A DNA stretch of 64,000 nt from Malacoraja senta (GCA_038087875.1 CM075982.1:37882001-37946000), one strand, 5' to 3'. Counted from the stretch's first letter, positions 1,448-63,757 are shown. A program made the numbers and translations. The notes: generated by a model not told the origin, from the letters alone.

Positions 1448-1461
1448 TCTAGCTAAATGGC

Positions 1462-3487: not shown

Positions 3488-3591
3488 TGATGCTGCAACC
3501 TTTTGACTATGACCCGAATGAGAAAAGCAAGCACAAATTTATGGTCCAATCCATATTTGCTCCGGCAGACTGCCAAGACATGGAAGCAGTA
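3488..3591 (+). CDS. VAPB: VAPB coding exon (MSP domain; equivalent of mammalian exon 3)
   Basis: cccacag|TG ATG CTG CAA... reads (V)[34 protein letters not shown]|gtatgt; 104 bp. Confidence 0.96.
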
Positions 3592-4735: not shown

Positions 4736-4816
4736 TGGAAAGAAGCAAAGGCAGATGAATTAATGGATTCTAAGCTGCGATGCGTCTTTGAGCTTCCCTC
4801 TGAGAATGAGAAAACA
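4736..4816 (+). CDS. VAPB: VAPB coding exon (exon 4 equivalent)
   Basis: ttacag|[27 protein letters not shown]|gtaagt; 81 bp, phase 0. Confidence 0.96.
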
Positions 4817-8640: not shown

Positions 8641-9145
8641 TGGTCATTGAGATGGGGAATCGCCATCTGTTTCTCCTTTAGCTGTAACCTTAGGCAAACA
8701 TGGCTATTTTGACTCTTCTATGGGGATCTGTTGGTAAATGCTTTTTACAGGAGCAGGAACTAAGAGTATTTTAAACAGAAGTTTTATTTTTAACAAAAGG
8801 CCATGTTTAAATTTGGTTACCTTTTTGTCATGTTTCTCTCTTCCTATGGCCTGGCCTCCAGGGGAAATCAGCAGTTCATTGCAGAACATCACAGGCACAC
8901 ACCACAACTCTACAGCTTTGCCTAGCATAGCATTAAATTGGTTAGACTTGCAGGTAACAGTCACCACAGAATAAAGGGGAACATATGGCCGCAGTTTCGC
9001 TCTGTAACAGCAGGATAACTTTTCCAGAATCATGGCTGCATCTAAATTATATACAAAATAAATCAGTCTCATTTAACTGAAACCATGGGATTACCTAGCT
9101 TTACTGCCAGTGGAACAGTCCAATCACCTGCACTCCAGACAAAAT

Positions 9146-9990
9146 AAGAGTCATACGGCATGGAAACAGCCTTCAGCCCAACTCATCCCTGCTGATCAAG
9201 ATGCCCCATCTGAGTGGATCCCATTTGTTTGCATTTGGCTTGTATCCCTCTAACCCTTTCCTATTCATGTACCTGTCTAAATGTCCTTTAATTGGTGTTG
9301 TAATACCTGCCTCCTGGCAGCTATTTCATATACCCACCACCTTCTGAGTTAAAATGTTGCTGCTAGGGTTCCTATTAAATCTTTCCCCTGTCACCTTAAA
9401 CCTATGTCTTCTGGTTCTTGATTCCCCTACTCTGGGTAAAAGACGGCACATTCGCCCTACATCTTCCTCTCATGATTTTGTACATCTCTGTACGATTACC
9501 CCATAGTCTCCTGTGCTCCTGTGCTCTGCGATTCATGGACATCACCATTTGCTGGGTGTCTTCTCTGGTGATGCTCCTGTGCTCTAAGGAATAACGTCCT
9601 AGCCTGCCCAGTGTATCCCTAGAGTCATGGTGGCATCCTTGTCAATCTTCTCTGCACTTTTTGTCCAGTTTAATGACATCCTATAGCAGGATGACACAAT
9701 ACTCCAAATGCAGCCTCACCAATCTCTTGAACAACAGTAACATAATATCCCTATACTTAATATCCTGACTGACGAAGGCCAATGTACCAAAAGCCTACTT
9801 TACCATCTACCAGTGACGCCACTTTCAAGGAACTACATCCTTGCATTTTAGATGCCTCTGCTCTTCAACACTCCCCAGGGTCCAACCATTCACTGTGAAG
9901 GTCCTGGTGTAGCTTGACTTCCCACGATGTAAAGCATTGCACTTATCTGCATTAAACACCATTAGCCATTCCTCACCCACTAGCCCAGTT
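9146..9990 (-). mobile_element. Decayed CR1-type LINE 3' fragment
   Basis: Reverse complement resembles the CR1 RT C-terminus and 3' UTR seen at 18466-19570. Confidence 0.65.
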
Positions 9991-11419
9991 GCTATTACTT
10001 GTCACTATAATAACTTGTAACTATACTTAGAACTGTGAACTCTCTCCTTGTAGTTGATCTTGGTGGTGTTAGGAATCTTATCTGTATCACACTTGTAAAT
10101 GACCTTTTCCATATATAGTCGGCGATCTCGAGTGGGTTACTTAAAGGAGCAAAAAAAGGTCCTTTTCCACTTTTGTATCAAATCAGGGGAATTCAGAATT
10201 TTGGATATTCCTATAAGCTTCATTAACATGTTTTAAGTATGCTCATCGTTTGACCTAATGCAAAACCCTTCATTGATTAGGGAAATATGTGATTTTGAAC
10301 ATTAATCTTTGGCACATTGGGTTTTTCTTGCAACATCAAGTGTAGTTCAGTCAACTCCATCATAGCATCTCTACCAATGTACCAATGACTTAATGTTCTA
10401 ATGCATGTGAGCAAGGACTGCGTTCAAGGACAATCTCAGACCATCTTGTGCACTAAATGAGTGGATGTGTATACTCCCATGTGTGTGAAGACTCACTAAA
10501 TTGAAATGTAACTAATTTATTGTGGTAACCAAAGGCATGCAACTGACCTGAAAACTAAACAAGAAGGCTGACTGCTCTAAACCAAAAGTCCAGTAATTGC
10601 TCCTAACCAGGACTACTGCAAGACGCTCAGCCGAGTGTTCATTACCTCCACTTTCCAGTATTTTCCCACACCTCTGGTTCTTCTATAAGATATCAAGACC
10701 CTGTCGGTGACTGTTAACCCACCTTGCTCAGGACTCCAATCAAAATGTTAGCCTATCATTTCCTTTTCAGATGCTGATGGTTCTTGCTTGCCATTTCCAA
10801 CATTTTAAACATTTTTTTCAGTGCCAACAATTGCAGAAGGGTAGTGACAAGATATGGGAAGCATCCCACAAGATCCGTCAACCTTCCAAGGAAATTAATT
10901 TACTTGCAGTCTCGTTTAATGTGACCTTAAATGTCATTTGTGTTGGACTATTACAGTGCCACCATTGCCCTGATGTCCCAGTGAATAGATGTATCAATGT
11001 GTCCAGTCTGAATGTTTCAGAACACACTTCATTTTTACAGCCTGGGTTGAACTTCAGCCTCAATAAAGCAAACCTTCCTATTCAGTCAGCAACCCTTAAT
11101 GGGCTCCCTTTTCCCCGAATCTCCGGGGAGCCTGGTCTGGGAAGTGACAGTGCTGTGATAGCCTCTGGATTAGTACAATAAGCTTTTGAATTCCATTGTC
11201 GTAGGATGGTCTGATGACGCTTAGTTTGGGAGGACTGAAAGTAAAGAAATATATCCTTTAGTTCTGTGGAAGAAAGCCCTGTTATCAAAAAGTATCTTTC
11301 ACATTCTGGATATACAAAGTGTGTGAATTATCACTAGGTCCTAACCCATTAATGTGCATAGGAAAGATCCCACAGAAGCAAACGATTTAATTGTCTAAAA
11401 GAGTAAATCAGGAGTGCTC

Positions 11420-11835
11420 ACAATACAATACAATACAATACAATACCATTTATTGTCATTTGAACCTCAAATGAGGTTCAAACGAAATTTGGTTTCTGCA
11501 GTCATACAAACAAGTAAAAAGAACCAAGACACAACACAATTTACACAAACATCCATCACAGCGAATCTCCTCGCTGTGATGGAAGGCAAAGTCTTATCTC
11601 TCCCCTGCACTCCCCATTCTCCTCCCGATGTCAGAGCCCCCGGCGGGCGATGGAAAATAAGTCCCGCGGCCATTAAAGCCGCGCCGGGCGATGCAAGGCC
11701 GCGCTCCGGGTCTTGATGTTGGAGCCCCCGGTAGCGCTAGCAAGTCCCGCGGCCATTAAAGCCGCGCCGGGCGATGTTAGACCCAGCTCCAGGTCATCTT
11801 CAACCCCGCAACTCGGGCGGGAGAAGTTGCCGTTG
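11420..11835 (-). mobile_element. GC-rich non-autonomous retroelement (truncated), family shared with 29405-30273 and 62161-63757
   Basis: (CAATA)n tail followed by TTTATTGTCATTT; shared GCCATTAAAGCCGCGCCGGGCG and CAACCCCGCAACTCGGGCGGGAGAAG. Confidence 0.7.
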
Positions 11836-12063
11836 AGGTCTATTGTAATGAGGTCTATTGTATCCATCAGGAAGATGAGGACCAATGCTTAACTCCTACA
11901 ATACTGTCATTTGGAGGTGAGAATGCTACCACTGAGTTCAATTTCCATCTCCCGTAACACTAACTTGTAACAGAACTGATGCTTGGAATATAATTTCTAT
12001 TCCAACACTTTTAGACTGGCTTAAAGTAGAAAACCTTTTTATAACTTTAATCACTTTCTGCAG

Positions 12064-15045: not shown

Positions 15046-16179
15046 ATGAATAGTAGCACAATGTGTATGAAAGAACTGCAGATGCTGGTTTAAATTGAAG
15101 GGAGACTCAAAATGCTGGAGTAACTCAGCGGGACAGGCAGCATCTCTGGAGAGAAGGAATGGGTGACGTTTTGGGTCAAGACCCTTCTTCAGACTGTACC
15201 TTCAAATAGTAGCACAAAGTGCTCACTCCAAATGTAACCCAAAGCTTTTGTGGTATGTGGTGAGTTTCAACTCTCGCATATGTACCAAATATCTAGCATT
15301 CTTTTAAAGGCAAGACAAAGGCGTTTTTGTTTTTGTTTTAAAATTCCAGTGGCTGTTTGGAGCAATTGCTGGGAAATCTCATTGATAACAGTACCTTTTG
15401 GAGCCAGGTTTTTCCAGTGACGTGAGCTAACTTTGGAGCGCAAGGCTTGCAATTGACGTTGAATTTTGAAACGTGCAGCTACTTGTTATGTAGACCAAAT
15501 TAATTGGGAAAATCTAGATAATTGAGCAACTGGGCTTCCCAGTCCAACAACAGATGGAGATCCACCGATTGGTTAACCACTTCACCTCATCTGTGAAATC
15601 TGAAACGACTAACTGCATTAATATTTGATAACATGGCACCCAGTTATTCAGTATCCATGATGTCACCTTGGAGAACAGTGTAATTTAGTACAGGGGCTTG
15701 CGAGGCATTTAACTGCCAAGCTGGCCGTGAATTTACCTTGTTCCATCAGTGACCTTTATATGCGTGGATAATGTTTTGGCCCTGCATAATGGGAGGCACC
15801 TATTAGCTTTCACAGCCCTTGGGAGGGGAGAGGGAGTGAGACCACCTGGACTAGCTGGGTCCGTGTATCCCAGTGGGTGTCAATCCATAACTTTTCCATC
15901 ATCTGTTGGGAATCCAATTCGACCTTGTACGAAGGTAAATAAAAGGAGGCAAATTCATAAGATGGGGGAATGAAAACCGAAAAGAACACTGACATTGAGA
16001 GGGAGAGCAGTTACTGGAATCCTGAAATCAATGGGTGCTGGAATTACCAAGCAGATCAGGCTCAGTGGTAAAAGAAGAGTTGGTGTTGTGAATGTATGGT
16101 CTTGCATCAGACCTGGGCAGTTGTCTGAATGTATTATTGACTCCAGGGGACTGCACCATGTTATGATGTAAGCTTTGTT

Positions 16180-17736: not shown

Positions 17737-19575
17737 ATTTTTTGAGGATGTAACTAGGAAAATGGACAAGGGAGAGCCAGTGGATGTAGTGTACCTGGAC
17801 TCCTGCAGGAACGGGGTAGTGATTGGGGATGATCATGGTCACCCCTTACTCCCCATGGAATCTTTCTTCCTCTTTGGAATGAACCAATCCTGCACCTTCT
17901 GGATTATACCCAGAAATACTTGCCATTGTTGTTCCACTGTCATCTCTGCTAGGGTATCTTTCCAGTCAACTTTGGCCAACTCCTCCCTCATGGCTCTATA
18001 GTCCCCTTTGTTCAACTGTAATACCGACACCTCCGATTTACCCTTCTCCCTCTCAAATTGTCGATTAAAACTTATCATATCACTACCTCCTAATACCTCC
18101 TTTACCTCGAGTTCCCTTACCAAATCCAGTTCATTACTCAACACTAAATTCAGAATTGCCTTCTACCTGGTAAGCTCCAGGACAAGCTACTCCATCACGG
18201 AGGCACTCCACAAACTCCCTTTCTTGGGGTCCAGTTCCAACCTGATTTTCCCAGTCTACCTGCAGGTTGAAATCTCCCATAACACCGTAGCATTACCTTT
18301 GCGACATGCCAATTTTAACTCTTGATTCACTTGCACCCTATATGCAAGCAGTTTGGGGGGGCTGTAGATAACTCCCATTAGGGTCGTCTTTAGGGCCTCT
18401 AAAGTGACCAAACCCTTAATAAGGAGATTAGTGGGCAAAATTAGCGGACACGGTATTGGGGTAGAGTGCTGACATGGATAGAAAATTGGTTGGCAGACAG
18501 GAAACAAAGAGTAGGGATTAACGGGTCCCTTTCAGAATGGCAGGCAGTGACTAGTGGGGTACCGCAAGGCTCGGTGCTGGCACCGCAGCTATTTACAATA
18601 TACATCAATGATTTAAATGAAGGGATTCAAAGTAACATTAGCAAATTTGCAGATGACACAAAGCTGGGTGGCAATGTGAACTGTGAGGAGGATGCTATGA
18701 GAATGCAGGTTGACTTGGACAGGTTGGGTGAGTGGGCAGATGCATGGCAGATGCAGTTTAATGTGCATAAATGTGAGGTTAACCACTTTGATAGCAAAAA
18801 CAGGAAGGCAGATTACTATCTAAATGGTGTCAAGTTGGGAAAAGGGGAAGTACAACGGGATCTGGGGGTCCTTGTTCATCAGTCAATGAAAGTAAGCATG
18901 CAGATACAGCAGGCAGTGAAGAAAGCAAATGGCATGTTGGCCTTTATAACAAGAGGAGTTGAGTACAGGAGCAAAGAGGTGCTTCTGCAGTTGTATAGGG
19001 CCCTAGTGAGACCACACCTGGAATATTGTGTGCAGTTTTGGTCCCCTAATTTGAGGAAGGACATTCTTGCTATTCAGGGAGTGCAGCATAGGTTTGCAAG
19101 GTTAATTCCCGGGATGGCGGGACTGTCATATGCTGAGAGAATGGAGCGGCTGGGCTTGTATACTCTGGAGTTTAGAAGGATGAGAGGGGATTGATCTTAT
19201 TGAAACATAAGATTATTAAGGGTTTGGACACGCTAGAGGCAGGAAACATGTTCCTGATGTTGGGGGAATCCAGAACCAGGGGCCACAGTTTAAGAATAAG
19301 GGGTAAGCTATTTAGAACGGAGATGAGGAAACACTTCTTCACACAGAGAGTTGTGAGTCTGTGGAATTCTCTGCCTCAGAGGGCAGTGGGGGACGGCTCT
19401 CTGGATGCTTTCAAGAGAGAGCTAGATAGGGCTCTTAAAGATAGGGGATATCTTTAGGGGATATGGGGAGAAGGCAGGAACGGGGTACTGATTGGGGATG
19501 ATCAGCCATGATCACATTGAATGGCAGTGCTGGCTAGAAGGGACGAATGGCCTATTCCTGCACCTATTGTCTTGT
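17737..19575 (+). mobile_element. CR1 LINE RT region (rearranged; ORF 18466-19194 plus 3' UTR)
   Basis: VDVVYLD, SGVPQGSVL, KFADDTKLGG, RPHLEYCVQFWSP; CR1 3' tail CTATTGTCTTGTCTA. Confidence 0.92.
17836..18390 (-). mobile_element. CR1 endonuclease/linker fragment in inverted orientation
   Basis: Minus ORF with EVLGGSDM, KGDYRAMREELAKVDW, QQWQVF. Confidence 0.8.
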
Positions 19576-21223: not shown

Positions 21224-22459
21224 CAAGATTCAAGATTCAAGAGAGTTTATTGTCATGTGTCCCAGATAGGTCAATGAAATTCTTACTTTGCTTCAGCACA
21301 ACAGAATATAGTAGGCATGAATACAGAACAGATCAGTGTGTCCATATACCATTATATAAATATATACACACATGAATAAATAAACAGATAATGAGCTATT
21401 AATGTTCAGAGTTTTGTTTGAGTTTAGTTTAATAGCCTGATGGCTGTGGGGAAGTAGCTATTCCTGAACCTGGACTTTGCAGTCTTCAGGTTCCTGTACC
21501 TTCTACCTGAAGGTAGCAGGGAGATGAGTGTGTGGCCAGGATGGTGTGGGTCCTTGATGATGATGCCAGCCTTTTTGAGGCAGCGACTGCGATAGATCTC
21601 CTCAATGGTAGGGAGGTCAGAGCCGATGATGGACTGGGCAGTGTTTACTACTTTTTGTAGTCTTTTCAGCTCCTGGGCGCTCAAGTTGCCGAACCAAGCC
21701 ACGATGCAACCGGTCAGCATGCTCTCTACTGTGCACCTGTAGAAGTTAGAGAGAGTCCTCCTTGACAAACTGACTCTCCGTAATCTTCTCAGGAAGTAGA
21801 GGCGCTGATGTGCTTTCTTTATAATTGCATCAGTTTTCTCGGACCAGGAGAGATCTTCAGAAATATGCATGCCCAGGAGTTTGAAGCTCTTGACCCTCTC
21901 TACCATCGACCCGTTGATATAAACGGGACTGTGGGTCCCCATCCTACCCCTTCCAAAGTCCACAATCAGTTCCTTGGTTTTGCTGGTGTTGAGGGCCAGG
22001 TTATTGTGCTGGCACCATATGGTCAGTCGGTTGATCTCTCTTCTATACTCTGACTCATCCTCATCAGTGATACATCCCACAACAGTGGTGTCATCAGCGA
22101 ACTTGATGATGGAGTTCGCACTTTGACCGGCTATGCAGTCATGAGTATAGAGTGAGTACAGCAGGGGCTGAGCACGCAGCCTTGAGGTGCTCCCCTGCTG
22201 TGTTATCGAGGCTGACACATTTCCACCAATACGAACAGTCTGTGGTCTTTGAATGAAGAAGTCGAGGATCCAATTGCAGAGGGATGCGCAGAGACCCAGA
22301 TCTGAGAGCTTGGTAACCAGCTTGGAGGGGATGATTGTATTAAATGCCGAGCTGTAATCAATGAATAACAGCCTGACATATGAGTTTTTGTTGACCAAGT
22401 GGTCCATAGCGGAGTGGATAGCCAGCGAGATCGCATCCACCGTTGATCTGTTGCACCGT
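21224..22459 (-). mobile_element. Rex1/Babar non-LTR retrotransposon, 5'-truncated, relatively young
   Basis: 338-aa frame with [16 protein letters not shown] and [10 protein letters not shown]. The GAPQG motif is scrambled by compensating frameshifts. (TCTTGAA)n tail. Confidence 0.92.
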
Positions 22460-22768
22460 TTAGCAACAATGCTAAATTCTAAAAAGCCATTGTAGGAAAA
22501 AAGTCCGATTTTTATTTTTTAATATTTTGCCACTGTCAGAAGATGTGGTTCTTGTCTCATGAGTGATCTTTTTGTTTACCTGTAGATCTTTATTTTATTG
22601 TCTTCCAACTTAACCAAACAGTTGATTAAATGAACAAGTAATGTTGACTGAAGATGAATTCTCTTAACCTAACACATTGAACACATGAAACACTCGCAGA
22701 TTTGGAGCTGATTGCAAAGTTGTAATTGTTGGAGTTGTTGTAATGCTTAACACATATTAATATAACAT

Positions 22769-22959
22769 GTGTAGGAAGGAACTGCAGATGCTGGTTTAAA
22801 CCAAAGATAGACAAAAAAGCTGGAGTAACTCAGTGGGACTGGCAGCATCTCTGGAGAGAAGCAATGGGTGACGTTTCGGGTCTGAAGAAGGGTCTCGACC
22901 CGAAACATCACCCATTCCTTCTCTCCAGTGATGCTGCCTGTCTCACTGAGTTACTCCAG
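22769..22959. repeat. Palindromic Penelope-type short element with hammerhead core at 22878-22913
   Basis: Foldback 22820-22959; centre reads GGGT-CTGAAGA-A-GGGTC-TC-GACCC-GAAACATC-ACCC. Confidence 0.75.
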
Positions 22960-25809: not shown

Positions 25810-28000
25810 GAACGTCTGGGCCACATTTGGAGCATTGAGTGCAGTTCTGGTCACCACAGTAATGACTGGGGCCTGGAGAGTGTTGTAGAATAGAGAGCAG
25901 AGAGAGATCAAAGGGTTCGAGTGCATGCTTCCCTGAAAGAGGTGACACCGATTAACACGATGAAGAAGGTGTATGGCATGTTTGCCTTCATCTGACCGGC
26001 CTTTGAGTACAAGAGTTGTGACATCATGTTATAGTTGTATAACGTATTGGTAAAACCGCATCTAGGATATTGTGTGCATTTATCATAAGATCATGTGATA
26101 GGAGCAGAATTAGGCCATTCGGCCCATCAAGTCTACTCCGCCATTCAATCATGGCTGATCTAACTCTCCATCCTAACCCCATTCTTCTGCCTTCTCCCCA
26201 TAACCTCTGACACCCATACTAACCAAGAATCTATCTATCTATCCACTGACTTGGCCTCCACAGTTCTGATCACTTTACCAAAGAAGGATGTCGGAAGTTT
26301 GAAAGGAGTCAGAAAAGATTCACAAGGTGTTGTTGGGACTGGAGGCTTTGAGTTATAAGACAAGATACGCTGGGACTGTTTTCCCAGAGCAAAGGAGGAT
26401 GAGGGGTGACGTTATAGAAGGTCAGGCCCCAATCATTATAAAACCATGAGGGGGCATAAATAAGGTGGATGGCCACACTCTTTTTCTGAGGGGAGGAGAG
26501 TCTAAAACAAGAGGGTATAGGTTTACTGTGAGAGGGGAACATTTTAAATGGGACCTGAGGGGCAAGTTTTTCACAAGGACAAAGGAGGAAATTTATGTGT
26601 GGTGCCAGCGGAAATGGATGAGGTCCTTGAAAGCAATTGTATTGCTTTTCACAAAGTAGTTGGGGGTCGATTATGTCGCGATCAGAGATGGTTAAGTTGA
26701 TATTCTAAAGCATGTTGATATTAAGCAGGGGGGAGGGTGTCTTAAAAAGCATTCAGATGGGTAAGTTTCCAGGTCCTGATGTGATCTATCCCAGGACACT
26801 GAGGGAAGCAAGAGGGCAGATTGCTGACGCCGAGACAGATATCTTTGTATCCTCTTTAGATACAGGTGAGTTCCCAGAAGACTGGAAAATAACCAATGAC
26901 GTTACCCCGTTTGAAAAAGGGAACACTGAGAAAACCAGGAAATTATTCGCTGGTAATCCTTACATCAATGGCGACGCATTTTGGTAGGTCAAAGCAAGAG
27001 GAACGTTTACAGTAAATGGCAGGACTCTTAGGAACACTGACATTTAGAGGGATCTTGGGGTGAAAGACCACAATTCCTTATAAGTGGTGACACAAGTAAA
27101 TGAAGAAGATGTGTGGCATCCTTGCCTTCCTTGAATATAAATGTTGGGGTCAGCTTTGGTTCGGTCACATCTGGAGTATTGTGTGTAATTCTGATCAACA
27201 CACTAACTAAAGGATACAGTGGCTTTGGAGAGGGTGCAGAGGAGTTTCACTAGGATGTTGTCTGGAATGGAGTGTATTATGGATTGCACATTATGGAAGT
27301 TGGGGGGAGGGGGGGGGGGGGGGGGGAAGAAGCCAAGACATCTGTGCATGTGTCAAAAAACATGTTTATTTACTTTTTTTCACAAATTCAATGAGAGGAA
27401 ATTTTATTCTGTATCTCACACTTTTCAGTATTAATTTGTGAATTCTGTAAGAATGAATTTCTGTTACTTGAATGACTGTAACACAGTGATCACCTGCATG
27501 AGCTGTAAGGGAAGATTAGACAAACTTGGACACAAAGTGCTGGAGTAACTCAATGGGTCAGACAGCATCTCTGGAGAACATGGATAGGCAACGATTCGGG
27601 TCAGGGGTATTTGACAATCTTGGATTATTTTCTCTGGGGAATTGGCAGCTGAGGAGGCATCTGATACAAGTTTATAAAATGATGAGAACCAAAGATAGGT
27701 TAAATAGTCAGAGTGCTTTTCCAAAAGTGGAGATTTCAAATGCAAGAGGGTACAGGTTTAGGTACAGGTGAAAAGGGTAATGTTTTTTTTTTAACATAGA
27801 GAGTGGTACATGCCTGGAATGTGCTGTCAGGAGAGGTGGTGGAAGTAGACAAGATGGCAATGTTTAAGAGGCATTTAGAGAGACACATCAACAGACAAGG
27901 ATTAGATCGATGCAGATCATGTGTAGGCAGATGAGGTTCGTTAGATTAGCTTCAGGGTAGGTACAGACATGGTGCATCAAAGGGCCTGTTCCTGTGCATA
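25810..28000 (+). mobile_element. Cluster of nested, decayed CR1 fragments
   Basis: Several PHLEYCVQFWSP-like and ERVQRxFTRML-like segments; an inverted CR1 tail at ~26085-26260. Confidence 0.7.
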
Positions 28001-28945
28001 CTGATATAATGGTAAGAAGCCAGTACATAACAAAGCATAACACAAAGTGCTGCAGGAACTTAGTGAGTCAGGCACCATCTAGGAGAGGAATAGACAAGTG
28101 ACTTTTCAGGTCAGGACCCTTCTTCAGATTAAATCAACCCAAATTGGTGTCTGTCCATTCCCTCCCCAGGTGCTGCTTGACCCACTGAGTTCTTCCAGCA
28201 CTTTGTGTTTTGCTCAAGATTTCACCATCTTCAATCTCTTGTGTATATCTATATAATAAATCATGTTCTTCATGCACTAATACATGAAATGCCTCAAGTT
28301 AAATACTGGTGGAGCAAGCAATTCAAAAGGTGACAGGCCTAATGGTTTTTATTTTAAAGAATCTGGGATGTTGATAAAAAAAATCTTGCTCAGGTCCTCT
28401 TGGACTTAGATTAGACCAAATGGGACAGAGCCTTGGTGAGACCACTGGACCATGTGCATTCTTGGTTTCCATATCTATGAAAGAACAAATTTGTCTTGGG
28501 GCAGTGCGGTTTACACATACTAGGCTGAAGGCTATACTTCAAGCACAGATTACTTAATTGAGAAGGAAGTGGGATAGTCTCCTGGGAACGTACAACATTT
28601 TGAAAACTGTTCACAATGCACAAGTTGAAAGGTAATTCCCTCAGAGTGGAGACAAGAACCAGGGTAATTTCTCTGGATAAGGGGGTCAACCATGTACAAC
28701 TGAGTTGAGGAAAACTTGCTTTTCACCAAGGGTTGTTAATTGCAACTCATGTTACAATTAGTCAATGGACGGTATGGTATATTGTCACAATCTAACATAT
28801 GTTGTAATCTAATACAATCATCTGTTTTATACCTCCAGGCTCAACCAGTTTAACCCCTTCCTGGCCAGCTTCCTAATCTAACATTAGAATCCATATTCCA
28901 ATCCAATGGCACAGTGTACTGCTGTTAAACAAAATTACAGCTTAA

Positions 28946-30651: not shown

Positions 30652-31189
30652 AGGACATAATTCCAGAGCATGGATGAGAGAACTGAAGGTGGAGACACAA
30701 TTTATAGGAGATATGAAAACTAGGAATGTGTGGGTGGCCATTAATGAGGAGGTCAGATATCTCAGAGGGCAGAGAGAAACTTTCAGCCAAGGGAGAGGCG
30801 AAGTCAGGAAGGGAATATGAGATAGCGATGGCAGTTTTAGAATGGAGATGTTGTCGGATATGGAGCCAAATTCTCATAGAACGCATCATATTTTCCGAAA
30901 GTCGCCTTGGGAATATCTGAGGAGCATTTTCCCAGTCTATACAGCAGTCTCTCAGCAGGTCAGGCAGCATGTGTGGAGAGAGTAGTAGTTAATGCTTCAA
31001 GTCCAGTCCAGTCCAGTCCAGGGTCAGAGACAGAGAGAGAAGCGGCGCGATTCCAGCGCCAGCCGCTGGAAGGCGCTAGTTCTCGCAGTCGGACGGATTT
31101 GGAGGTTGCACTGTTTCAATACCGTCCGGTCCGGGTTCTCCCTCCTTTCTCTTCCCCCAGAAGAAGGAGGCGGGGGCCGGAGCCTGGAG

Positions 31190-34530: not shown

Positions 34531-34659
34531 TGCAGGAAGGAACTGCAGATGCTGGTTTACACTGAAGATAGGCACAAAAGGCTGGAATAACTCAGCGAGA
34601 TGGGCAGCATCTCTGGAGAGAAGGAATGGATGACGTTTCAGGTCGAGACCCTTCTTCAG
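34531..34659 (-). mobile_element. Short Penelope-type element beginning at a hammerhead core
   Basis: 18-bp TSD AGTGGTGCTTAGAAATTG (34513-34530 / 34660-34677); minus strand begins CTGAAGA AGGGTCTCGACCT GAAACGTC. Confidence 0.8.
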
Positions 34660-36795: not shown

Positions 36796-37534
36796 GTGGG
36801 GCATAGATAGAATTATAAGGGGCATAGATAGGGTACACGGTCAGAATCTTTTTCCCAGGGTGACTGTGTAAAATGCTAGCTTTAAAATGTGAGGAGGAAA
36901 GTTTAAAGGAGATTTGTGGAGCACATGTTTTAAACAGACTGATGTCCAGAATGCAATGCCGGGAGTGATGCTGGAAGCAGATTCACTTGGGAGTGTTTAG
37001 GAGGCTTCTAGAAAGGCACATGAATATGCATGGAGTGGAGATATATATATATATTATATATATGTACAGGCATAAGGGATTAGTTTAATTGGGTATCATC
37101 TTCGTCACAGACATCATGAGACAAGGGCAGTATCCTGTGCTTTACTCTTCTATACATGACAATATATATACGTGACAATATAAAGAACCACTATTATGTT
37201 CTATATAAATGCTGGAATTCTCTGCCAACACTCCGATGTGTGCTTTCATCAAAAAGACAGCTGTGGTTCAAGTAGATGACTGCCATGTCTAAATGTCAGC
37301 CTGTTGGTGATGCTCACATCCTAAAACAGAATTAAAATATAATTTAACCAAGTTCTGCAAACAACTGTATACATTACCGGTCTTAATAACGTCAGAACAC
37401 AAAATGGTGAAAATATTCAACAGGACAGAAACCATTACAAGTAGGAAATGGACACTTTGGAGATGGTCAGAAGTGTTTTTTACCAGAATACTGCTGGATT
37501 AGAGAATATTAGTTATAATATCCCTAGAAGCCCT

Positions 37535-39320
37535 AAGAAGAGAGTGCAGAAAATCAGAACGGAAGTACAAATCTGATAAGCTTCAAATTTCCTTTGAACT
37601 TCTGAAAAACAATCTTCACAAATACCAGGAAGCAGTAAAATCTGCAAGAACAAAATACTTTTCCGCCCTTATTTCCAAAAACGCTCATAACTCCAAGGTC
37701 CTTTTTAGTACCATTACCTCTATCATATGTCCTGCCTCCAGCACCAGCTTAACTGGGTCCCCTGCTAAGTGCGAGGAATTTACTACATTTTTCACCAGCA
37801 AAGTTAACATCAGATCGAATATTTCCCCTCCCATCCGTGACCTGGCTGTCTCATTGGTCTGTTCTTCAAAATTAGACTGTTTCCAACCCGTTATTCTACC
37901 CTCCCTTGTAAAACTTGTCACCACCATGAAACCTACTACCTGCCCCCTCAACATTGTCCCCTCTGCCCTTCTGAAGGATGTCATTACAATAGCCGGTCCC
38001 AGCATCCTCGCCATCTTCAACAGTTCTCTGGCCACTGGCACTGTTCCTACCTGCTTCAAGCATGTGGTGGTCCAGCCCCTCCTGAAAAACCCTAACCTCG
38101 ACCCCACCTTGCCAAGCAACTACAGACCTATTTCAAAACTGCCTTTCCTTTCTAAAGCCCTTCAAAAGGTAATTTTAAGTCAACTTATGCCTTACCTTCA
38201 CCAAAATACTATCGTGGAAAATTTCCAATCAGGTTTCAGGGCCCACCATAGCACAGAGTCTGCCATGTTGAAGGTACATAATGACCTACTTCTCACCATT
38301 GACTCCGGCGACTGTGCAATCCTGTTCCTTCTCGACCTCAGCGCAGCATTTGATACTGTCGACCACACCAGCCTAATTGACCGTCTCCGGTACGGGGTTG
38401 GTATTGATGGCACTGCCCTGAGCTGGTTCATCTCCTACCTCAAAGGTAGGAGTTTCTCTACTAACATAGGCAACTCTTTCTCCTCCCCAGCTAGCCTCTG
38501 CTGCGGGGTTCCACAAGGTTCCATCCTTGGCCCCATTCTCTTCTCCCTGTATATGCTCCCCTTAGGCCAAGTCATTCAAAGGCACGGCATTTCCGTCCAT
38601 GGCTTTGCAGACGATACACAGCTCTATCTCCCCCTGAAGCCCAACAACCGATCAAATAGCAAAAATAAAACAATTCCTCCAGTTTGATGACCTCGAAAAG
38701 ATCATCCACACATTTATCTCCTCCCGCCTCGATTACTACAACACCCTTTACACTGGCATCAGCCAATCTTTCCTGTCCTGCTTGCAACTGGTCCAAAACG
38801 CTGCAGCGAGATTCCTGACGGGCACCCGTAAAAAGGGACCACATCACCCCGATTCTGGCCTCTCCACTGGCTCCCTGTGCGGTTCCGAATAAATTTCAAG
38901 ATCCTTCTTTATGTTTACAAAGCCCTTAACGGGCCTGCCCCCACCTACATCAAAAGTCTGCTTACCCACCACACCACCTCCAGGTCCCTCAGATCGGCCA
39001 ACTTGGGGTTACTGAACATCCCGCGGTCTAGGCATAAGCTCAGGGGCGACCGCGCCTTTGCGGTTGCAGCTCCTAGACTGTGCAACAGCATCCCTCTTCC
39101 CATCAGAACTGCCCCCTCCATCGACTCCTTAAAACTCATCTTTACTCTAAAGCCTTTCTTGACGTCCTCTGAGGGAGGGCTATATGTATGTATTTATGTA
39201 TGTACTTAATCTATGAACCACTCTTGTATAACGTTAGTACCTCCACCAATGTAAAGCACTTTGGTCAACGAGAGTTGTTTTTTAAATGTGCTATAGAAAT
39301 AAAAGTGACTTGACTTGACT
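37535..39320 (+). mobile_element. L2-clade LINE, 3' portion
   Basis: [56 protein letters not shown]; AATAAAA followed by (GACTT)n tail. Confidence 0.93.
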
Positions 39321-56713: not shown

Positions 56714-59254
56714 GTAAGCATTCAAAGATGGGGCAATGTGTTGGAGTGTCAGAGGCTGAGGGTAAACCTGAGAGAAGTTTATAAAGTTGTGGGAGGAATA
56801 GATAGGGTAAACAGTGGAATGCTTTTCCCAATTTGGAAATGTCAAATATTACAATAGACAATAGACAATAGACGATTACCTTCAGGTAAGGGGGAGAAAG
56901 TTTAAAGGAGAAGTTTTTTTAGACAGAAAGGTAGGTGCCTGGAATGCATTGATGGTGGTGGAAGCAGATGCAATAGTGGTTTGGGATGCTTTTAGATAGG
57001 CACATGAATATGTAGAGAATGGAGGGATATGGAACATCTGCAGGCAGGATTTGACATCCTATTTAATACGGACATCATAGGCTGAAGTGTCTGTTCCTCC
57101 ACTGTACTGATGTAAGTTCTATGTTCTTTGATTCAAATAACACTTTTTGGATATAATTTACCTCTCGTGTAAAGTGCAAACAATGCTTTCTAAAACAGTA
57201 CGAAGGATGATATTCACTGGTATTTCGTCTCAGAATAGAGGCATGGCCAAATGTCACCTGTAGACTAAAAATTGGCTGCGGTTGATTATGTTTGCCCAAC
57301 TGTTGACAAGCAGGCAAAATGCTTTAGTGAGCTCTTTTATTTAGTTTAACAGTTTCCAAGGTAAGTTGGCATTGGCAAATGCTGTGAAATTCATCTTTGA
57401 TCTGTAGCACTAAACTCATTGCACAGCAGTAGCAGGTGGTATTGTCTGCCACCACTGTGCACCATATTTATTACTGTGGACTGGTGATGAATTTATAGGC
57501 ATCTGAATCCTAAAGCAGACGCCAAATTAATTTGTCCTGTTTTCTTAACTAAAATATTCTGTCTTCATGAGGTATCTTTGACAGTGGTGATTATTTTTTT
57601 GGACAATCATTATAAGTGCCTCTCACCTTTACACCTGTTTTTTGCTCATTATTTTCTATCTTTATTCCCCAGCTGCAGATCTCCGATCTCTTGCTAGTGA
57701 ACCATCATTTAATTTGCCACGAGGCAAGATAATCTAAACAAATTTAATCTCCACTGTTTCGGCCCGAAACGTTACCTATTTCCTTCGCTCCATAGATGCT
57801 GCTGCACCCGCTGAGTTTCTCCAGCATTTTTGTGTACCTAATCTCTCCACTGTTTTGTTTTGTTTATCCACCCATTCATATATGTCTGCTTTGTACCCTC
57901 ACCAAGGCTACTTAAAGTCTGATGTCCAGAAATAAACATACTGCTCCAGCCAATGACAATAACAAATGTTGGAAACGTTCAACAGATCAGGTAGCATCTG
58001 TGGAAAGAGAAACACCTGAAGTCAGAGGTCCCCTTGTCAGAGCTGTTCTGATGAAGGATCTTTCTCTGTTTGTCTCTCGCCTGAGAAACCTCAGTACTTC
58101 ACACCCAGGCAGTTAAAAGGAAAGCCAATCTCATTACACAGGATCCCACCCACCCCCTGCACAAGTCCTTCCAACTTCTGCCATCAGGCCGCCGATATAA
58201 AGTTCCCCTATCTAAGAAAAACATCCACAAAAACTCATTCATACCCATTGCCATAAACAGCTTAAATAAAAAATGAACAATGGACAAATTAACCCTGACG
58301 CACTGTCACTTTACACGTATCCACAACTTTCATCTTGTCTATTTTTACAGTTTTTAATCCTTATACTTACTTTTAAGATCTATACACACGGTGTGTGCTC
58401 GCAGAAATCTGTGTTGTATGACTGCTTATCAGTACATTGTCCTGTTTGTATGTTGAGCCACGCCAAAGAAGATTTTCTGTTACGACAGACAATAAAGTTT
58501 TCTGAATCTGAATCTGAACCTCACCTGTTTCTCTGTTTGCCTCTCGCCTTTCCAGCATTTCCTGTTCTTTGTCTCAGATTTTCAAGCACCAGCAGCTTTT
58601 GGTTTTCACACTAGTCTAGCTTATAAAGGTTCCTCAGGAACGGTGCCCATCCATTCCCTGCAGTGATGCTGCCTGTCTTGCTTTATTTTGCTCATGGTGG
58701 TACCACATTGTTTTTGCTTTTGATGCTCCATTCTTCAGTTTCTAAATCCTATGACTCCAACGTACATAGTTGGGGTTTTGAATAAAATCTGTAGGAGTGA
58801 TGAGTGTTCCAGCCCCACAATTATTGCTGTGTTTTAATAACATCTGGTATGAGGCATGTCTGGAGATTTATCCTTATGGTGAAATCCTCTGATTTCTTAC
58901 TTCTCTGGATTTAGCTGGAGTGGGCAGGAAATATCAGCAAAGGTCTGCATTTTTCATTATCCACTGCCTTCCGTAGATTGTGTATGTAGGTGACAAACGA
59001 CATAATAAGCTTGTCTATGAAGCAGCTTTCAGTAGAATGATTTTCCGACGTATCGCTCAATTGCACATGAGAACAGGTGAGGGATTGCATGACACCATCA
59101 TTTATATCTCGGAAATACTAAGCTTCTCTGGGTGAGCTGGGGATACAGTAAACCCTTGTTGTAATGGACCCCTTTATAACGGATTTTTAATATAGCGGAT
59201 GGATTTGCCAACGCCTCCCTGGCTCGCACCCTCTCCCCAGCCCCGGCTTCTGCC

Positions 59255-59430
59255 GGCACACCAGCCCGCAAGGTGCACCAGCAAGCCTTCCTTCACCCAC
59301 CGCCATGTCCGGTTGACACGGCTGTTCATGCAGCTCGGGTTATAGCCCCTTGGACAGCGCTTTCTTCAGGCTGTCATTACTGACAGGTCGTGCTCGGTCA
59401 CCATGGGGCTCTTTCCCCTCTTACCAGCTG
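59255..59430 (-). pseudogene. Histone H1 globular-domain fragment
   Basis: PMVTEHDLSV / LKKALSKG / NSRVNRTWRWVKEGLLVH with frameshifts. Confidence 0.7.
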
Positions 59431-59470
59431 ACATGAAGGAGGTGGTGGATTGGGAGGAGACAAAGCGCCG

Positions 59471-59623
59471 GGTGAGAGGGAAGGGAGCTCCACGGTGACC
59501 GAATGTGTTCTGTTAGTAGTGGCGGTCTGAGGAAAGCGCTGCTGGCCAGGGGCTACATCGTGAGCTGTAACAACAGCCACTTCAACCAGACTGTGCGGCA
59601 GCTGGTGAAGAAGGGCTCGCTGA
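59471..59623 (+). pseudogene. Histone H1 globular-domain fragment
   Basis: STVTECVLLV / LRKALLARGYIVSCNNSHFNQTVRQLVKKGSL; compare H1 [20 protein letters not shown]...LVxKGTL. Confidence 0.8.
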
Positions 59624-60779
59624 TTGAACAGTGGAGTAGACTTGATGGGCCGAATGGCCTAATTCTGCTCCAATCACTTGTGAAGGGTCCCAATGTCATC
59701 TCTCCATGTTCTCCAGAGATGCTGTCTGACCTGCTGAGTTACTCCAGCACTTTGTGTATTAACCATCATATGGTTCTTTGTTTCAACCATACATAGTGAT
59801 ATAACGTACTTGGTTATAGCGGACAATCGGCAATAACAGACACCATTACCACCCCCACCCACGCCCCATTGTGCGTTACAACAAGGGTCTACTGTACTTG
59901 AAGAAGAATACAAGGGGAGTCTGCGGTGCTCTTTTTTATGACCCTGTCCTGATTCAGCAAATGGATGAAATGGGTTCCAAACAAATAAAATACCTTTGCA
60001 GGAAATATTAAATGTAAATTCTGAAAATGTTAGCAAATTAATGTGCAGAAATGCTTTCAGTCTTAATGAAAGTCACTAACATAAAATATTGACAGTTCTG
60101 TCTCCTCAGAGAATATTTCATATGCCAACAATTCCCAAAATTTCTTCCCTAATTTCACATAGAACATTGAACAGTACAGCACAGGAACGGGCTCATCAAC
60201 CCACAATGTTTGCATCGAATATGATGCCAAGTTATACTGATCTCATCTGCCTGTAAATGATCCATATCCCTCTGTTCCTTGCACCTCCGTGTGTCTATCT
60301 ATAAGCCTCTTAAACGCCACAATAGTATTTGCCTCCACCGCCACCTCTGGCAATGTGTTCCACCACTTTCTGTAAAAAAAATCATGCACTCACATCTCTT
60401 TTAAACTTCCCCCCTCTTATAGCTATGCCCAGTGGTGTTGGGCAATTCCACACTGGAAAAAAGGGTTTTGACCGTCTACCATATCTATGCCTCTCATAAT
60501 TTTATAAACTTCTATCAAATCGCTTCTCAACCTCCGGTTCCAGAGAAAACAGTCCATCTATCCAACCAGTCTCTGTAGCTCTAGCCCTCTAATCCAGGCA
60601 GCAGTTTGGTAAACTACTTCTCCAAAGCCTTCACATCTTCCCCATAATGGGGCGACCAAACTGCATATAATACTCCATATGCGGCCTAACCGAAGTCCTT
60701 TGGAGTTGCATCATCATGTTTTCTTTTGTTTTACCGGCTTGGTCAATTCCAGTAAGAGGATTTTTGTTTCATGCCATAG

Positions 60780-60871
60780 GTTTGAAGAATCGAGAAGAAC
60801 GATCGAAACATTTTTTTGACACATCGGTGCCGCTAATGGATGATGCTGAAGACGACACCCTATATGACAAG
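60780..60871 (+). CDS. STX16: STX16 exon 6
   Basis: ccatag|GT+[30 protein letters not shown]|gtgggc; 92 bp, phase matches exon 5. Confidence 0.96.
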
Positions 60872-61237
60872 GTGGGCCTATAGGTGAATCATTCAGAGTA
60901 CGTACATTCAAATCCCACCAGCGCTGATCAAGTGTTTGAGTTCAGTTTTAAGAAAAATCTGTGAATAAGAAAGCTTATACAGGCACTCCCCGACCTACTT
61001 AATAGGCGTGTTATGTAAACTCACACTTGCGTAAACTATTCACAACAGGTGGTCCCGTTTCCTGAATGATCCGTGTTCTTGAAATGGGAGGATGGCGAGA
61101 ACTTCCCGTCCACCTCATAGATATAAAAGCGTTGCCTGGGTTTCTAGCCTTCTAGTTTTGGCCACTGTCGGTGCGACATTGGGAAGGTGAGTGAGAAAGA
61201 GGGAGGTTTTTGCTGAGTCGCCAACATCTTCCACAAG

Positions 61238-61494
61238 ATGTAGCAGAGCGCCCTTCTTCATCAGCTGCTGCACCGTCCGGTTAACGCGACTGTTGCGGCT
61301 CATGTCGTAGCCCTCGGCTGACAACACTTTCTTTAGGCTGCTGCCACTGAGAGGATGCGCTTGGTCACTGGGGCTCCCTTCCCTCTCACCAGCTGCTGCT
61401 TCTTCCTGTTGGCTATCATTTTATCCACTCTGCTGCTCCGCCGCTTCCCCCCTCCAACACCATCTCCTCCTCCTCCTCCCTTGGTCACCGACAT
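61238..61494 (-). pseudogene. Histone H1-like 5' fragment (ATG, basic N-tail, globular domain)
   Basis: MSVTKGGGGGDGVGGGKRRSSRVDKMIANRKKQQLVRGKGAPVTKRILSVAA, then frameshift to LKKVLSAEGYDMSRNSRVNRTVQQLMKKGALLH. Confidence 0.82.
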
Positions 61495-61509
61495 ATTCCA
61501 AGATGGAAT

Positions 61510-61768
61510 ATGTCGGTGACAGTGGGAGGAGATGACTGTGGAGGGGGGGAAGCGGACAAAGTGACGGCTGACGGGAAGAAGTAGCAGCTGGTGAGAGGAG
61601 AGGGGGCCCCATGATGATTGAGCGCATCATCTCAGTGTCAGTGGCCTGAAGAATGCACTGTCAACCGAGGCCAACAACATGAGCCGTTACAACAGCCGTG
61701 TCAACCGACCGGTGCAGCAGCTGGTGAAGAAGGGCTCACCAGTGCAGACCAGCGGCATCAGTGCCTAG
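61510..61768 (+). pseudogene. Histone H1-like 5' fragment
   Basis: MSVT...GPMMIERIISV / GLKNALSTEANNMSRYNSRVNRPVQQLVKKGSPVQTSGISA. Confidence 0.82.
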
Positions 61769-62160
61769 TTTTAAGGTGAAACAACACAAAATTCTAGAGT
61801 AACTCAACATACGGAATCAGTCAGAAGAAGGGTTCAGACCAAAACATAACCTATCTATGTTCTCCAGCGATGCTGCCTGCTCCACGGAGCATCTAACACT
61901 TTATGTCATTTTGTATAAAAACCAGCATCTGCAGTTCTTTATATCTACCTAGTTTTAATATGATTCCGACTTGCATAAAAATCTGATTTTGGTAAGGGTT
62001 TACGAAACGTAACCTTTACAAAATCGGGGAGTGTCTGTATAAGAAGTGACTGTAAAATGCTCTATGTAAGAATCAACAGGTTTATATTTACCTCAACAAT
62101 TAACTTTTAACTTGGGTAGAATGAGCAAATCTCATCCAATAAGTTTGCACTGCCTTCTGT

Positions 62161-63757
62161 AGATGGCGGCGCCTTGCGGCAGCGGCCACTACAGTCCGTC
62201 TGTCTTTTCTTTTCTTTTTGTCCTGTTAGGTGTATGTTTTTGGTTTTATTTTAATTTTATTTTTAGCTGTGTATATATGGGGGGGCAGGGGGTTTGGGGA
62301 AACTTTTTAATCTCTTCCCTGCACGGGGGACTTGACCTTTTCCCTGTCGAGTCAAGTCAAGTCAAGTCAAGTGAGTTTATTGTCATGTGTCCCTGATAGG
62401 ACAATGAAATTCTTGCTTTGCTTCAGCACAACAGAACATAGTAGGCATTGACTACAAGGCATTCTATAAATATATACACACATGAATCAATATACTGATA
62501 AAGTGCAAATAACAGTTAATTAGCTAATATAGTTCAGTGTTTTATCCGAGCCAGGTTTAATAGCCTGATGGCTGTGGGGAAGTAGCTATTCCTGAACCTG
62601 GTCGTTGCAGTCTTCAGGCTCCTGTACCTTCTACCTGAAGGTAGTAGGGAGATGAGTGTGTGGCCAGGATGGTGTGGGTCCTTGATGATACTGCCAGCCT
62701 TTTTGAGGCAGCGACTGTGATAGATCCCCTCGATGGAAGGGAGGTCAGAGCCGATGATGGACTGGGCAGTGTTTACTACTTTTTGTAGTCTTTTCCTCTC
62801 CAGGGCGCTCAAGTTGCCGAACCAAGCCACGATGCAACCGGTCAGCATGCTCTCTACTGTGCACCTGTAGAAGTTAGAGAGAGTCCTCCTTGACAAACCG
62901 ACTCTCCGTAATCTTCTCAGGAAGTAAAGGCGCTGATGTGCTTTCTTAATAATGGCATCAGTGTTCTCGGACCAGGAAAGATCTTCAGAGATGTGCACGC
63001 CCAGGAATTTGAAGCTCTTGACCCTTTCAACCATCGACCCGTTGATATAAACGGGACTGTGGGTCCCCATCCTCCTCCTTCCAAAGTCAACAGTTTTGCT
63101 GGTGTTGAGGGCCAGGATATTGTGCTGGCACCATATGGACAGGCACCATATCTCCATTGTGCTGGCACCATATCTCCATTGTCGTTGGGGCCTAACATCG
63201 TGGAGCCGGCGGCCTCCAACCGGAATCGACCTGGGGCTCCAGTTGCAGAGCCTGTGGACTCACCATCGCGGACTTCGGACCGCGGAGCGCTGTAGTGGCG
63301 CACGGCCACGACCCAGCTTCGGAGGCTCCGGCTGCAGGCCCTGAGGACGGTAACATCGGGAGCTCGCGAGTCCTTGGTGGGAGACCGCTTTTCGGAGCTC
63401 CCGCCCGAATCGAGCGGTTTAAATCGACCCGGAGCAGGGCCTTACATCGCCTGGCGCGGCTTAAACGGCCGCGGGACTTACCATCGCCCGCCGGGGGCTC
63501 TAACATCAATAACCTTGATCAGCACGATGCAGCAGTTTGACTGCTTGACTGCGGGAGAAGAAGAATAAAGAACAGAGAACAGGGAAGAGATAAGACTTTT
63601 GCCTTTTCACAGTGAGGAGGTGTTTGGAGATTCACTGTGATGGATGTTTGTGTGGAATTATGTCAATTGTGTGATTTGTTTTTTTTGCAGTTCTGACTGC
63701 AGGAACGTAATCTCGTTTGAACGTTGTATGTTTAAATGACAATGAATGGCATCTATC
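62161..63757 (+). mobile_element. GC-rich non-autonomous retroelement interrupted by a Rex1 copy
   Basis: 5' AGATGGCGGCG (YY1-like); homology to the reverse complement of 29405-30273 on both sides of the insertion; AATGACAAT...(ATCT)n tail. Confidence 0.7.
62351..63136 (-). mobile_element. Rex1 3' fragment
   Basis: 207-aa RT C-terminal frame nearly identical to the 21424-22440 copy; (GACTT)n tail. Confidence 0.92.

Follow-up and report, generated by a model that had tools for sequence, protein, structure and literature searches.

Two TA-flanked elements with inverted ends, 1.1 kb apart in the window (a 64,000-nucleotide stretch of the Malacoraja senta genome), carry fragments of a linker-histone H1 variant gene, which form one cargo of single origin now held between two unrelated sets of terminal inverted repeats (TIRs). 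Both belong to the Pack-TIR kind, in which transposon ends surround captured host DNA, and, in the literature searched, such a family is new to cartilaginous fish. The overall explanation, to which a probability of about 80% is given, is that these are Pack-TIR-type elements with a rearranged H1-variant cargo of single origin, element 2 representing the primary capture, and that they were copied and then decayed. The account also draws on seven further independent copies, taken from other sequencing projects and lying at different flanks, of which two are of element 1 type (L004, L008) and five of element 2 type (L001, L005, L006, L007, L010).

Architecture of the two elements

The original prediction described two TIR elements with different ends, each flanked by TA and each containing a head-to-head pair of H1-like arms. 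Both descriptions are upheld, as the inverted ends and the arms were located, the backbones proved unrelated and single arms matched only H1 globular domains in the PDB. Element 1 (59146-59894) has 26-nt TIRs at 59144-59169 and 59871-59896, 88% complementary, with TA on both sides; element 2 (60980-62037) has the different ends CAGGCACTCCCCGA and its complement, also with TA on both sides. Each end motif is absent from the rest of the 64-kb window, and shuffled sequence yielded 0 to 0.01 matches. Outside the H1 arms and a SINE-like piece, the two backbones have no mutual similarity. The features are as follows, with strand where one applies.

59144-59145: TA flank (target duplication), element 1 left; partner at 59895-59896; TA directly before CAGT... 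also in L004 and L008
59146-59169, plus: element 1 left TIR (CAGTAAACCCTTG...); same end in L004 and L008
59170-59265: element 1 left subterminal backbone, conserved in L004 and L008
59266-59430, minus: element 1 left H1 arm, donor codons about 45-104; 34-nt deletion junction 59364-59377, codon-104 junction 59266-59281
59431-59466: what is left of the palindrome centre in element 1; another species (organism C) has about 122 nt extra at this site
59467-59620, plus: element 1 right H1 arm, donor codons about 45-103; deletion junction 59521-59532; 84% identity to the donor over 96 nt
59621-59786, plus: very abundant SINE-like repeat pieces cutting off the element 1 right arm; summed depth 10^6 to 10^7
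59787-59870: element 1 right subterminal backbone
59871-59894, minus: element 1 right TIR
60978-60979: TA flank, element 2 left; partner at 62038-62039; TA before CAGGCAC also in L001
60980-61043, plus: element 2 left TIR and subterminal DNA of the transposon proper, in which the CGTAAAC motif occurs twice
61044-61217, plus: captured donor upstream DNA, oriented toward the palindrome
61218-61246, minus: additional short H1 N-terminal piece in element 2, adjoining codon 104 of the left arm; it represents donor codons about 5-11 or else duplicates the palindrome centre
61247-61500, minus: element 2 left H1 arm, donor codons 8 to about 104; deletion junction 61331-61344
61501-61503: element 2 palindrome centre, 3 nt, at donor codon 7/8
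61504-61779, plus: element 2 right H1 arm, codons 8 to about 112, ending TAGTTTTAAGGTGA; deletion junction 61639-61651; 79.6% identity over 113 nt
61780-61947, plus: element 2 SINE-like module, with a 16-nt direct repeat on either side (61764-61779, 61948-61963)
61964-62023: element 2 right subterminal backbone
62024-62037, minus: element 2 right TIR

Across both elements, the TIRs measure 14-26 nt and the target duplication is TA. Insertion at TA and ends beginning with CAG are traits that they share with miniature elements of the Tc1/mariner-pogo style. The ORF lists contain only short ORFs and no transposase gene inside either element, and neither an autonomous partner nor a transposase, including a pogo-type DDE transposase ORF, was found within the 64-kb window. 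Word-index protein searches with the element ORFs returned no matches. Separately, several database 'proteins' are read-through ORFs of the elements. The idea that each whole element is a palindrome, with one half copied from the other, was rejected because the left and right subterminal regions do not match as inverted copies. The earlier assignment to pogo/Tigger stands as far as the termini go: the TA target duplication and CAG-type ends were found, and the elements may be placed in that superfamily by these end features only. The ends of both elements may resemble those of human Tigger1 and Tigger2.

The H1 arms and their donor

Element 2 contains an uninterrupted 486-bp palindrome (61250-61735), and the corresponding arms of element 1 lie at 59279-59425 and 59471-59622. 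A long palindrome centre matching 61425-61478 is found in copy L004. Read in the donor frame, the centre gives K-M-E-Y-V-G-D, against E-M-E-D-V-G-N in the donor; its interpretation as two start codons with 5'UTR was rejected, the central ATGTCG being out of frame.

In all four arms, TCA (TTA in one) is followed by 11 nt and then CTG/CTA-AAG, with no indel between. Compared with the donor gene, this spacing amounts to one identical 34-nt deletion in every arm, at the cost of about 11 codons and of the reading frame; the frameshifting deletion proposed earlier as common to the four arms is thereby corroborated. No arm holds an intact globular-domain ORF, and stops and further indels are present; the arms are pseudogene fragments, not genes.

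Compared singly with PDB, the arms matched histone H1 globular domains and nothing else (E 8e-4 to 1e-2). A four-arm profile reached 6.4e-9 there, with H1 as all of its top 8 matches, and up to 3.1e-18 against 1.8 billion proteins. On single arms, the Pfam Linker_histone model (PF00538) gave E 0.019 and 0.048, under Pfam's threshold. With a linker-histone profile match found, the H1 identification stands.

As donor, R. longicauda XP_078280407.1 matches best, with 75 bits, whereas canonical H1 reaches about 38. The arm profile scores 57-81 bits on 'H1-like' proteins of cartilaginous fishes (skate, rays, sharks and a chimaera) and about 36-39 bits on canonical H1, and the N-terminal region of the donor also matches the arms. 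Intact relatives of the gene occur in 8 cartilaginous-fish species. These comparisons identify the donor as a divergent H1 variant, found here only in cartilaginous fishes. The canonical KERxGVSL-type H1 originally taken as the source reaches about half the bits of the variant and was rejected, since the N-terminal region of the arms and the upstream DNA match the variant only. The donor gene (L012:4001-4729) is intronless, carries Linker_histone and is 75-84% identical to the arms over the coding sequence at the DNA level. The arm consensus is only 85% identical to the Rhinoraja gene, which is a relative of the donor and not the donor itself.

Captured promoter and SINE-like module

Donor positions -555 to -521 recur in element 2 at 61047-61081 (85.7% over 35 nt), and positions -135 to -29 at 61102-61207 (78.5% over 107 nt, E 3.7e-19). 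The TATA box of the donor promoter falls at 61120-61131, and the remaining 5'UTR follows after the -29 match; the same upstream DNA is present in L001 and L006. Judged from these alignments, the apparent left backbone of element 2 is mostly the donor's own promoter, with its TATA box, and 5'UTR, facing the hairpin. No significant match to donor upstream DNA was found in the left backbone of element 1. The inner part of that backbone weakly matches, in minus orientation, donor codons about 5-25, a match equalled by 12 and 20 of 500 shuffles in two copies and by 182 of 500 in a third. Element 1 may hold donor codons 12-25 beside its left arm, where element 2 lacks them, and in that case it would be too simple to call element 1 a plain subset.

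The junction between right arm and SINE-like module is common to L001, L006, L007, L010 and the element-1-type L004, and the module is part of the shared cargo. A private late insertion in element 2 was rejected because the junction occurs in five other copies, one of them element-1-type. The 16-nt direct repeat suggests that the module was inserted into a master copy.

Single origin of the cargo

The 34-nt gap is identical in 14 arms from 9 copies. The left arms of both families have the codon-104 junction in common, while their right arms retain a donor-like VQTSG end. What is shared exceeds the two arms, since it takes in a second left-arm junction, between the N-terminal piece and codon 104 (61218-61246 in element 2), found in copies of both types, as well as the SINE-like module; element 2 adds the promoter and 5'UTR. 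The common deletion, codon-104 junction and right-arm-to-SINE junction show that the cargo arose once. These common features also leave hardly any probability for independent captures of the H1-variant gene by two families with convergent resemblance: that reading agrees with the unrelated backbones and with the clustering of arms by element in this window, but both families have the 34-nt deletion, the fold-back at codon 7/8, and the codon-104 and arm-to-SINE junctions. As for the original proposal that one broken cassette moved between two MITE families, the multiple copies and the common deletion and junctions support the single cassette, while the route between the families is one that we infer.

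In this window, 11 informative sites pair each arm with its partner in the same element, against 1 and 2 for the other groupings, and a tree of 14 arms gives 81% bootstrap to the element 2 arm pair. This grouping by element is not predicted by a single fold-back without later arm-to-arm conversion. The tree is star-like, the arms being too short for ordering events.

Copies, mobility and age

Junctions between left end and cargo are conserved at different flanks in L001, L004, L005, L006, L008 and L010, and TA adjoins the conserved end in copies at different flanks. The right ends of the other copies were not recovered because their contigs stop in the SINE, and whole-element mobility rests on the left ends and the two complete copies for that reason. 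Summed contig depth is 20 to 200 times higher over the arms than over the flanks in four species, and 20-400 times over the elements.

These copies also bear on whether the H1 palindrome and the SINE-like module were themselves a mobile unit of foldback type, which would have entered two unrelated miniature transposons separately before the composites amplified. The identical inner anatomy of the shared segment in both families, the very stable folding of its arms as long inverted repeats, and a depth over the element 2 arms exceeding that of element 2's own ends all fit this idea. It is nevertheless unlikely, as the shared segment has no flanking target duplication and its left edge is family-specific, with element 2 continuing into donor 5'UTR and promoter and element 1 not. 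Moreover, no palindrome lies outside a TIR backbone among the 7 extra copies (L007, left-truncated, is uninformative here), and the expectation that H1-like sequence elsewhere would sit within TIR elements was not refuted by them.

The arms are 64-86% identical to their own consensus, and the copies differ from consensus by about 23% and have deletions in arms and centres. In three further species (organisms B, C and D), contigs that run from the flanks into the elements, with 3.5-6% differences, place both insertions at this same site. The two are old and inactive DNA transposons of non-autonomous type and bear no sign of present function.

Proposed origin

For the favoured Pack-TIR reading, the following course is envisaged. 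The cargo derives from the intronless cartilaginous-fish H1 variant gene, and element 2, as primary capture, would hold one stretch of it that begins about 555 bp upstream and ends near codon 112, in which an inverted copy of codons 8-104 replaces codons 1-7. The cargo junctions carry short microhomologies (CA, GCC), which would best be accounted for by a series of three template switches while DNA was being replicated or a gap repaired. The 34-nt deletion would already have been there when the fold-back formed, and the SINE-like repeat would then have been inserted beyond the right arm. Element 1 would have received a subset of the cargo between unrelated ends, probably through template switching between transposon copies. 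Both composites may subsequently have spread in skate genomes by means of transposase supplied in trans, and later decayed.

A possible hairpin RNA

Inverted-repeat pseudogenes give rise to endo-siRNAs in mouse oocytes and flies. Element 2 might be, or have been, a mobile hairpin-RNA gene producing small RNAs against the H1-variant mRNA: the promoter fragment with its TATA box faces a hairpin of roughly 290 bp, for which a very stable fold is predicted (-373 kcal/mol, z -25). This is very improbable. Mismatches compatible with G.U pairing are similarly frequent on both strands (20 vs 18 in element 2, 19 vs 13 in element 1), and selection for an RNA hairpin was rejected on this lack of strand asymmetry. 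Both strands fold equally well, the copies have decayed to the extent given above, and element 1 has no promoter. None of the runs registered as RNA contains the stretch, which is not evidence of silence. A long shot of the same order is that young element-2-type copies were such genes, with the captured H1-variant promoter driving an antisense-sense repeat of the variant's own coding sequence, today's copies being fossils. If this were true, a transposon family would have made dsRNA against a host linker histone, possibly loosening chromatin silencing in the germ line.

Relation to known systems

In vertebrates, DNA transposons that carry gene sequence and occur in multiple copies are rare, and the literature searched describes none for cartilaginous fishes and no family of H1-carrying TIR elements. 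The junctions in the skate elements are unusually clear, and the coding-sequence fold-back, microhomologies and retained promoter record the assembly of a cargo that came to be enclosed by two sets of transposon ends with no relation to each other. A lineage-specific H1 variant gene family has moreover been identified as the source of a dispersed repeat, which in skate genomes is open to mis-annotation as histone pseudogenes or 'H1-like' genes.

Animal Pack-TIRs consist of TIRs and target duplications around duplicated host gene fragments, without a transposase (Tan et al. 2021, Nat Commun, PMC8277862). TcMariner-type ends form their second commonest class (115/370), and template switching, in the form of gap filling or the 'FoSTeST' model, has been proposed as the way they arise; the word 'shark' is absent from the main text of that study (PMC8277862). 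The skate elements share with them the TIRs, target duplications, host gene fragments and lack of a transposase. Most of the animal Pack-TIRs surveyed are single-copy and lie near the parent gene (PMC8277862), whereas the skate elements are multi-copy in several species, with a fold-back cargo including a promoter and with two unrelated TIR families.

Like the Pack-MULEs of plants, the skate elements capture gene fragments, the composite is amplified and the cargo is often rearranged and non-coding. They belong to another superfamily, however: in MULEs the TIRs are long and the duplications span 9-10 bp, in contrast to the 14-26 nt and TA here. With MITEs derived from pogo/Tigger (MER-type), they share TA flanks, CAG...CTG ends, short TIRs and repeated subterminal motifs. 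Finally, like fly hpRNA genes and the pseudogene hairpins of mouse oocytes, they present a gene-derived inverted repeat downstream of a promoter that could fold into long dsRNA; unlike those loci, they are transposon-borne, decayed and without strand-specific conservation.

Two elements with unrelated ends

Two elements with different terminal inverted repeats (TIRs), each flanked by TA as first noted, lie just 1.1 kb apart (59894-60980), a closeness that could reflect chance, local hopping or local copying.

59146-59894, element 1, starting CAGTAAACCCTTG, with the complement at the other end; TA on either side
60980-62037, element 2, starting CAGGCACTCCCCGA, with the complement at the other end; TA on either side

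The TIR arms of element 1 span 26 nt and are 88% complementary. Neither end motif occurs again within the 64-kb window, and shuffled sequence yields essentially none. Local alignment of the subterminal backbones against shuffles revealed neither mutual inverted copies nor any likeness between the elements, and the only likenesses found by BLAST were the H1-like arms and pieces of a SINE-like repeat that is extremely abundant. The TA-targeting and CAG ends expected of pogo/Tigger are seen, and the superfamily is assigned by these end features only.

The SINE-like repeat, which has an internal hairpin and reaches a summed contig depth of 10^6 to 10^7 in four species, occurs as follows:

59621-59786 and 61780-61947, copies within the elements
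5502-5550, 15070-15196, 22776-22959, 26092-26151, more window copies
27516-27588, 28040-28211, 30951-30979, 34573-34637, more window copies

Between the elements lies a LINE 3' end fragment (60154-60720; summed depth ~10^5) whose minus-strand ORF reads ...LRSDLIEVYKIMRGID..., and long stop-free, reverse-transcriptase-like runs at 18445-19191, 21427-22518 and 37503-38684 are LINE fragments. The 64-kb window contains no DNA-transposase-sized ORF. A (GTCAA)n microsatellite and a 37-nt unit in perfect tandem copies are present at 62343-62370 and 63119-63182.

Histone H1 arms and their donor

The H1-like sequence is confined, within the 64-kb window, to the head-to-head arms of the two elements:

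59279-59425 and 59471-59622, element 1 arms, with a spacer of only 45 nt
61250-61735, element 2 arms, a continuous 486-bp palindrome

Compared with solved structures, two separate arm translations matched histone H1 globular domains only (E 8e-4 to 1e-2), while a four-arm profile reached 6.4e-9 with H1 as all of its best eight matches; against Pfam, Linker_histone ranked top for single arms, yet under Pfam's threshold. On these matches the arm sequence is histone H1-derived, which upholds the identity first proposed. Canonical H1 is displaced as the donor: when the profile was searched against 1.8 billion representative proteins, the best matches (57-81 bits) lay far above canonical H1 (~36-39 bits). 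Top-matching proteins are named "histone H1-like" and come from Rhinoraja longicauda (XP_078280407.1, 75 bits), Carcharodon, Callorhinchus, Pristiophorus, Hypanus, Heterodontus and Narcine. These cartilaginous-fish proteins also carry the peculiar arm residues ...PTVTERVLSVAAA...SRNNTRVNRTVRQLVKKGSLVQTSGTGA..., and their glycine-rich N-terminus is reproduced in the element 2 arms. The donor was, by sequence likeness, an H1 variant of cartilaginous fishes. Its family (database proteins P0002-P0017) comprises apparently undescribed H1 variants, conserved from chimaera to skates, with the glycine-rich N-terminus and an AT-hook-like C-terminal GRP(R)K motif; R. longicauda has two paralogues on a single chromosome.

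The Rhinoraja gene, a relative of the true donor (L012:4001-4729), is intronless, carries Linker_histone and shares 75-84% DNA identity with the arms. The predicted common frameshift corresponds, against this gene, to a single deletion of 34 nt, a loss of some eleven codons plus one base, and the 11-nt spacing is present in all four arms with no indel between them there. The centre of the element 2 palindrome reads K-M-E-Y-V-G-D in the donor frame, matching donor E-M-E-D-V-G-N (residues 6-12), and the fold-back point therefore falls within coding sequence, at codon 7/8. Two central ATGTCG motifs were ruled out as start codons, being out of the donor frame.

A single origin of the cargo

Several proteins from the profile search proved to be read-through ORFs of decayed copies, and their contigs, from other sequencing projects, yielded seven more independent copies, with flanks unlike the window's and unlike one another, and TA preceding the conserved end:

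L004, L008, element-1-type
L001, L005, L006, L010 and truncated L007, element-2-type

Four idiosyncrasies are shared, one being the fold-back at codon 7/8. The 34-nt gap is identical in 14/14 arms from nine copies. In both families the left arm joins ...L-V to H-L-V-E-D-V-G with the microhomology CA (codon 104 to codons ~5-11, or alternatively to a duplicate of the centre), and right arms retain the donor-like V-Q-T-S-G end. Additionally, the junction from right arm through TAGTTTTAAGGTGAAA to SINE-like module is common to element-2-type copies and element-1-type L004. Independent capture by the two families is thereby excluded; judged by these junctions, the cargo has one origin and is now found between two unrelated end pairs, in agreement with the original prediction of one already-broken cassette in two TIR families.

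The entries P0010, P0020, P0027, P0031, P0032, P0035, P0037, P0039, P0042 and P0045 are such read-through ORFs rather than genes, and could lead to wrong H1-like gene calls in homology-based annotation.

A donor promoter and the probable assembly of the cargo

Element 2 also contains donor upstream sequence. Positions 61102-61207 match the Rhinoraja gene from -135 to -29 (78.5% over 107 nt, E 3.7e-19), including a TATA box at 61120-61131, and 61047-61081 match -555 to -521; the upstream match recurs in two further element-2-type copies, and in fuller copies the 5'UTR aligns to about -1. Transposon-proper DNA at the left end amounts to only ~60 nt, the inverted repeat plus two CGTAAAC motifs. 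The plus strand runs promoter, 5'UTR, short inverted N-terminal piece, antisense arm (codons 104 to 8), sense arm (8 to ~112) and SINE-like module. Two segments upstream of the Rhinoraja gene lie ~350 nt apart (L012:3483-3830), while every element-2-type copy has them side by side; either the Rhinoraja lineage gained an insertion or the transposon master underwent a deletion.

The promoter fragment is directed into the palindrome, an order suggestive of a hairpin-RNA gene, and very stable folds are predicted for palindrome RNA from both strands (-373 and -368 kcal/mol). That reading is highly improbable: mismatches that preserve G.U pairs do not differ in frequency between the strands, and copies are riddled with deletions. 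There is no evidence for any present function; the stretch was found as RNA in no run on record, which is not evidence of silence.

The simplest and most likely history begins with an element-2-type transposon that would have gained one contiguous gene stretch (~-555 to codon 112), already without the 34 nt or losing them soon after. A fold-back of the growing strand at codon 8, during the repair or replication, would have let it use itself as template as far as codon 104. A short switch to the centre, at a CA microhomology, and then a return to -1 of the first template, at a GCC microhomology, would have left an inverted arm in place of codons 1-7. A SINE-like element would then have inserted past the right arm, marked by a 16-nt direct repeat (61764-61779/61948-61963). 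The cargo of element 1 is a subset of element 2's, without the promoter, although a weak likeness suggests that it may hold codons 12-25 also; it was probably gained by template switching between transposon copies. A rival in which palindrome and SINE move together as one unit, inserted in both backbones, is unlikely, as the shared segment has no flanking target duplications and the two families differ in its left edge.

Within the window, arms pair by element (11 informative sites vs 1 and 2; 81% bootstrap for element 2), whereas under a single fold-back the left arms would be expected to group with each other. Conversion between the two arms of one copy would account for the pairing seen. 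Element-1-type left arms have a private 3-nt gap missing from their right arms, so homogenisation at the family level is incomplete.

Repetition and age

Depth was summed over contigs from four species that aligned to the window with at least 80% likeness.

Summed contig depth in run X1 (not a copy number)
Flanks: 25-45
Element 1 ends: 6,000-12,000
Element 1 arms: 2,200-3,900
Element 2 arms: 630-6,300

Ends and cargo are both repeated in all four species, and arm depth against flank depth, with the seven extra copies, supports the suspected amplification. Flank-to-element junctions of both elements are bridged by contigs of three other species (organisms B, C and D; differences 3.5-6%), so that both insertions are older than the splits of those species. 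One organism C contig carries ~122 more bases at 59435/59437, which makes the short centre of element 1 the product of a later deletion; the match between the centres of L004 and element 2 agrees with this. Identity of the arms to their majority consensus is 64-86%, and that of the consensus to the Rhinoraja gene is 85%; the star-like arm tree is as expected of an old burst followed by neutral decay.

Comparison with known Pack-TIR elements

The H1-carrying elements are a Pack-TIR family, miniature transposon ends around captured host DNA, TA-targeting and CAG-ended; no such family in cartilaginous fishes is described in the searchable literature. Its mechanism is of an already known kind. Among Pack-TIRs the family is unusual in being multi-copy, in keeping the donor promoter and in having one cargo in two end families.
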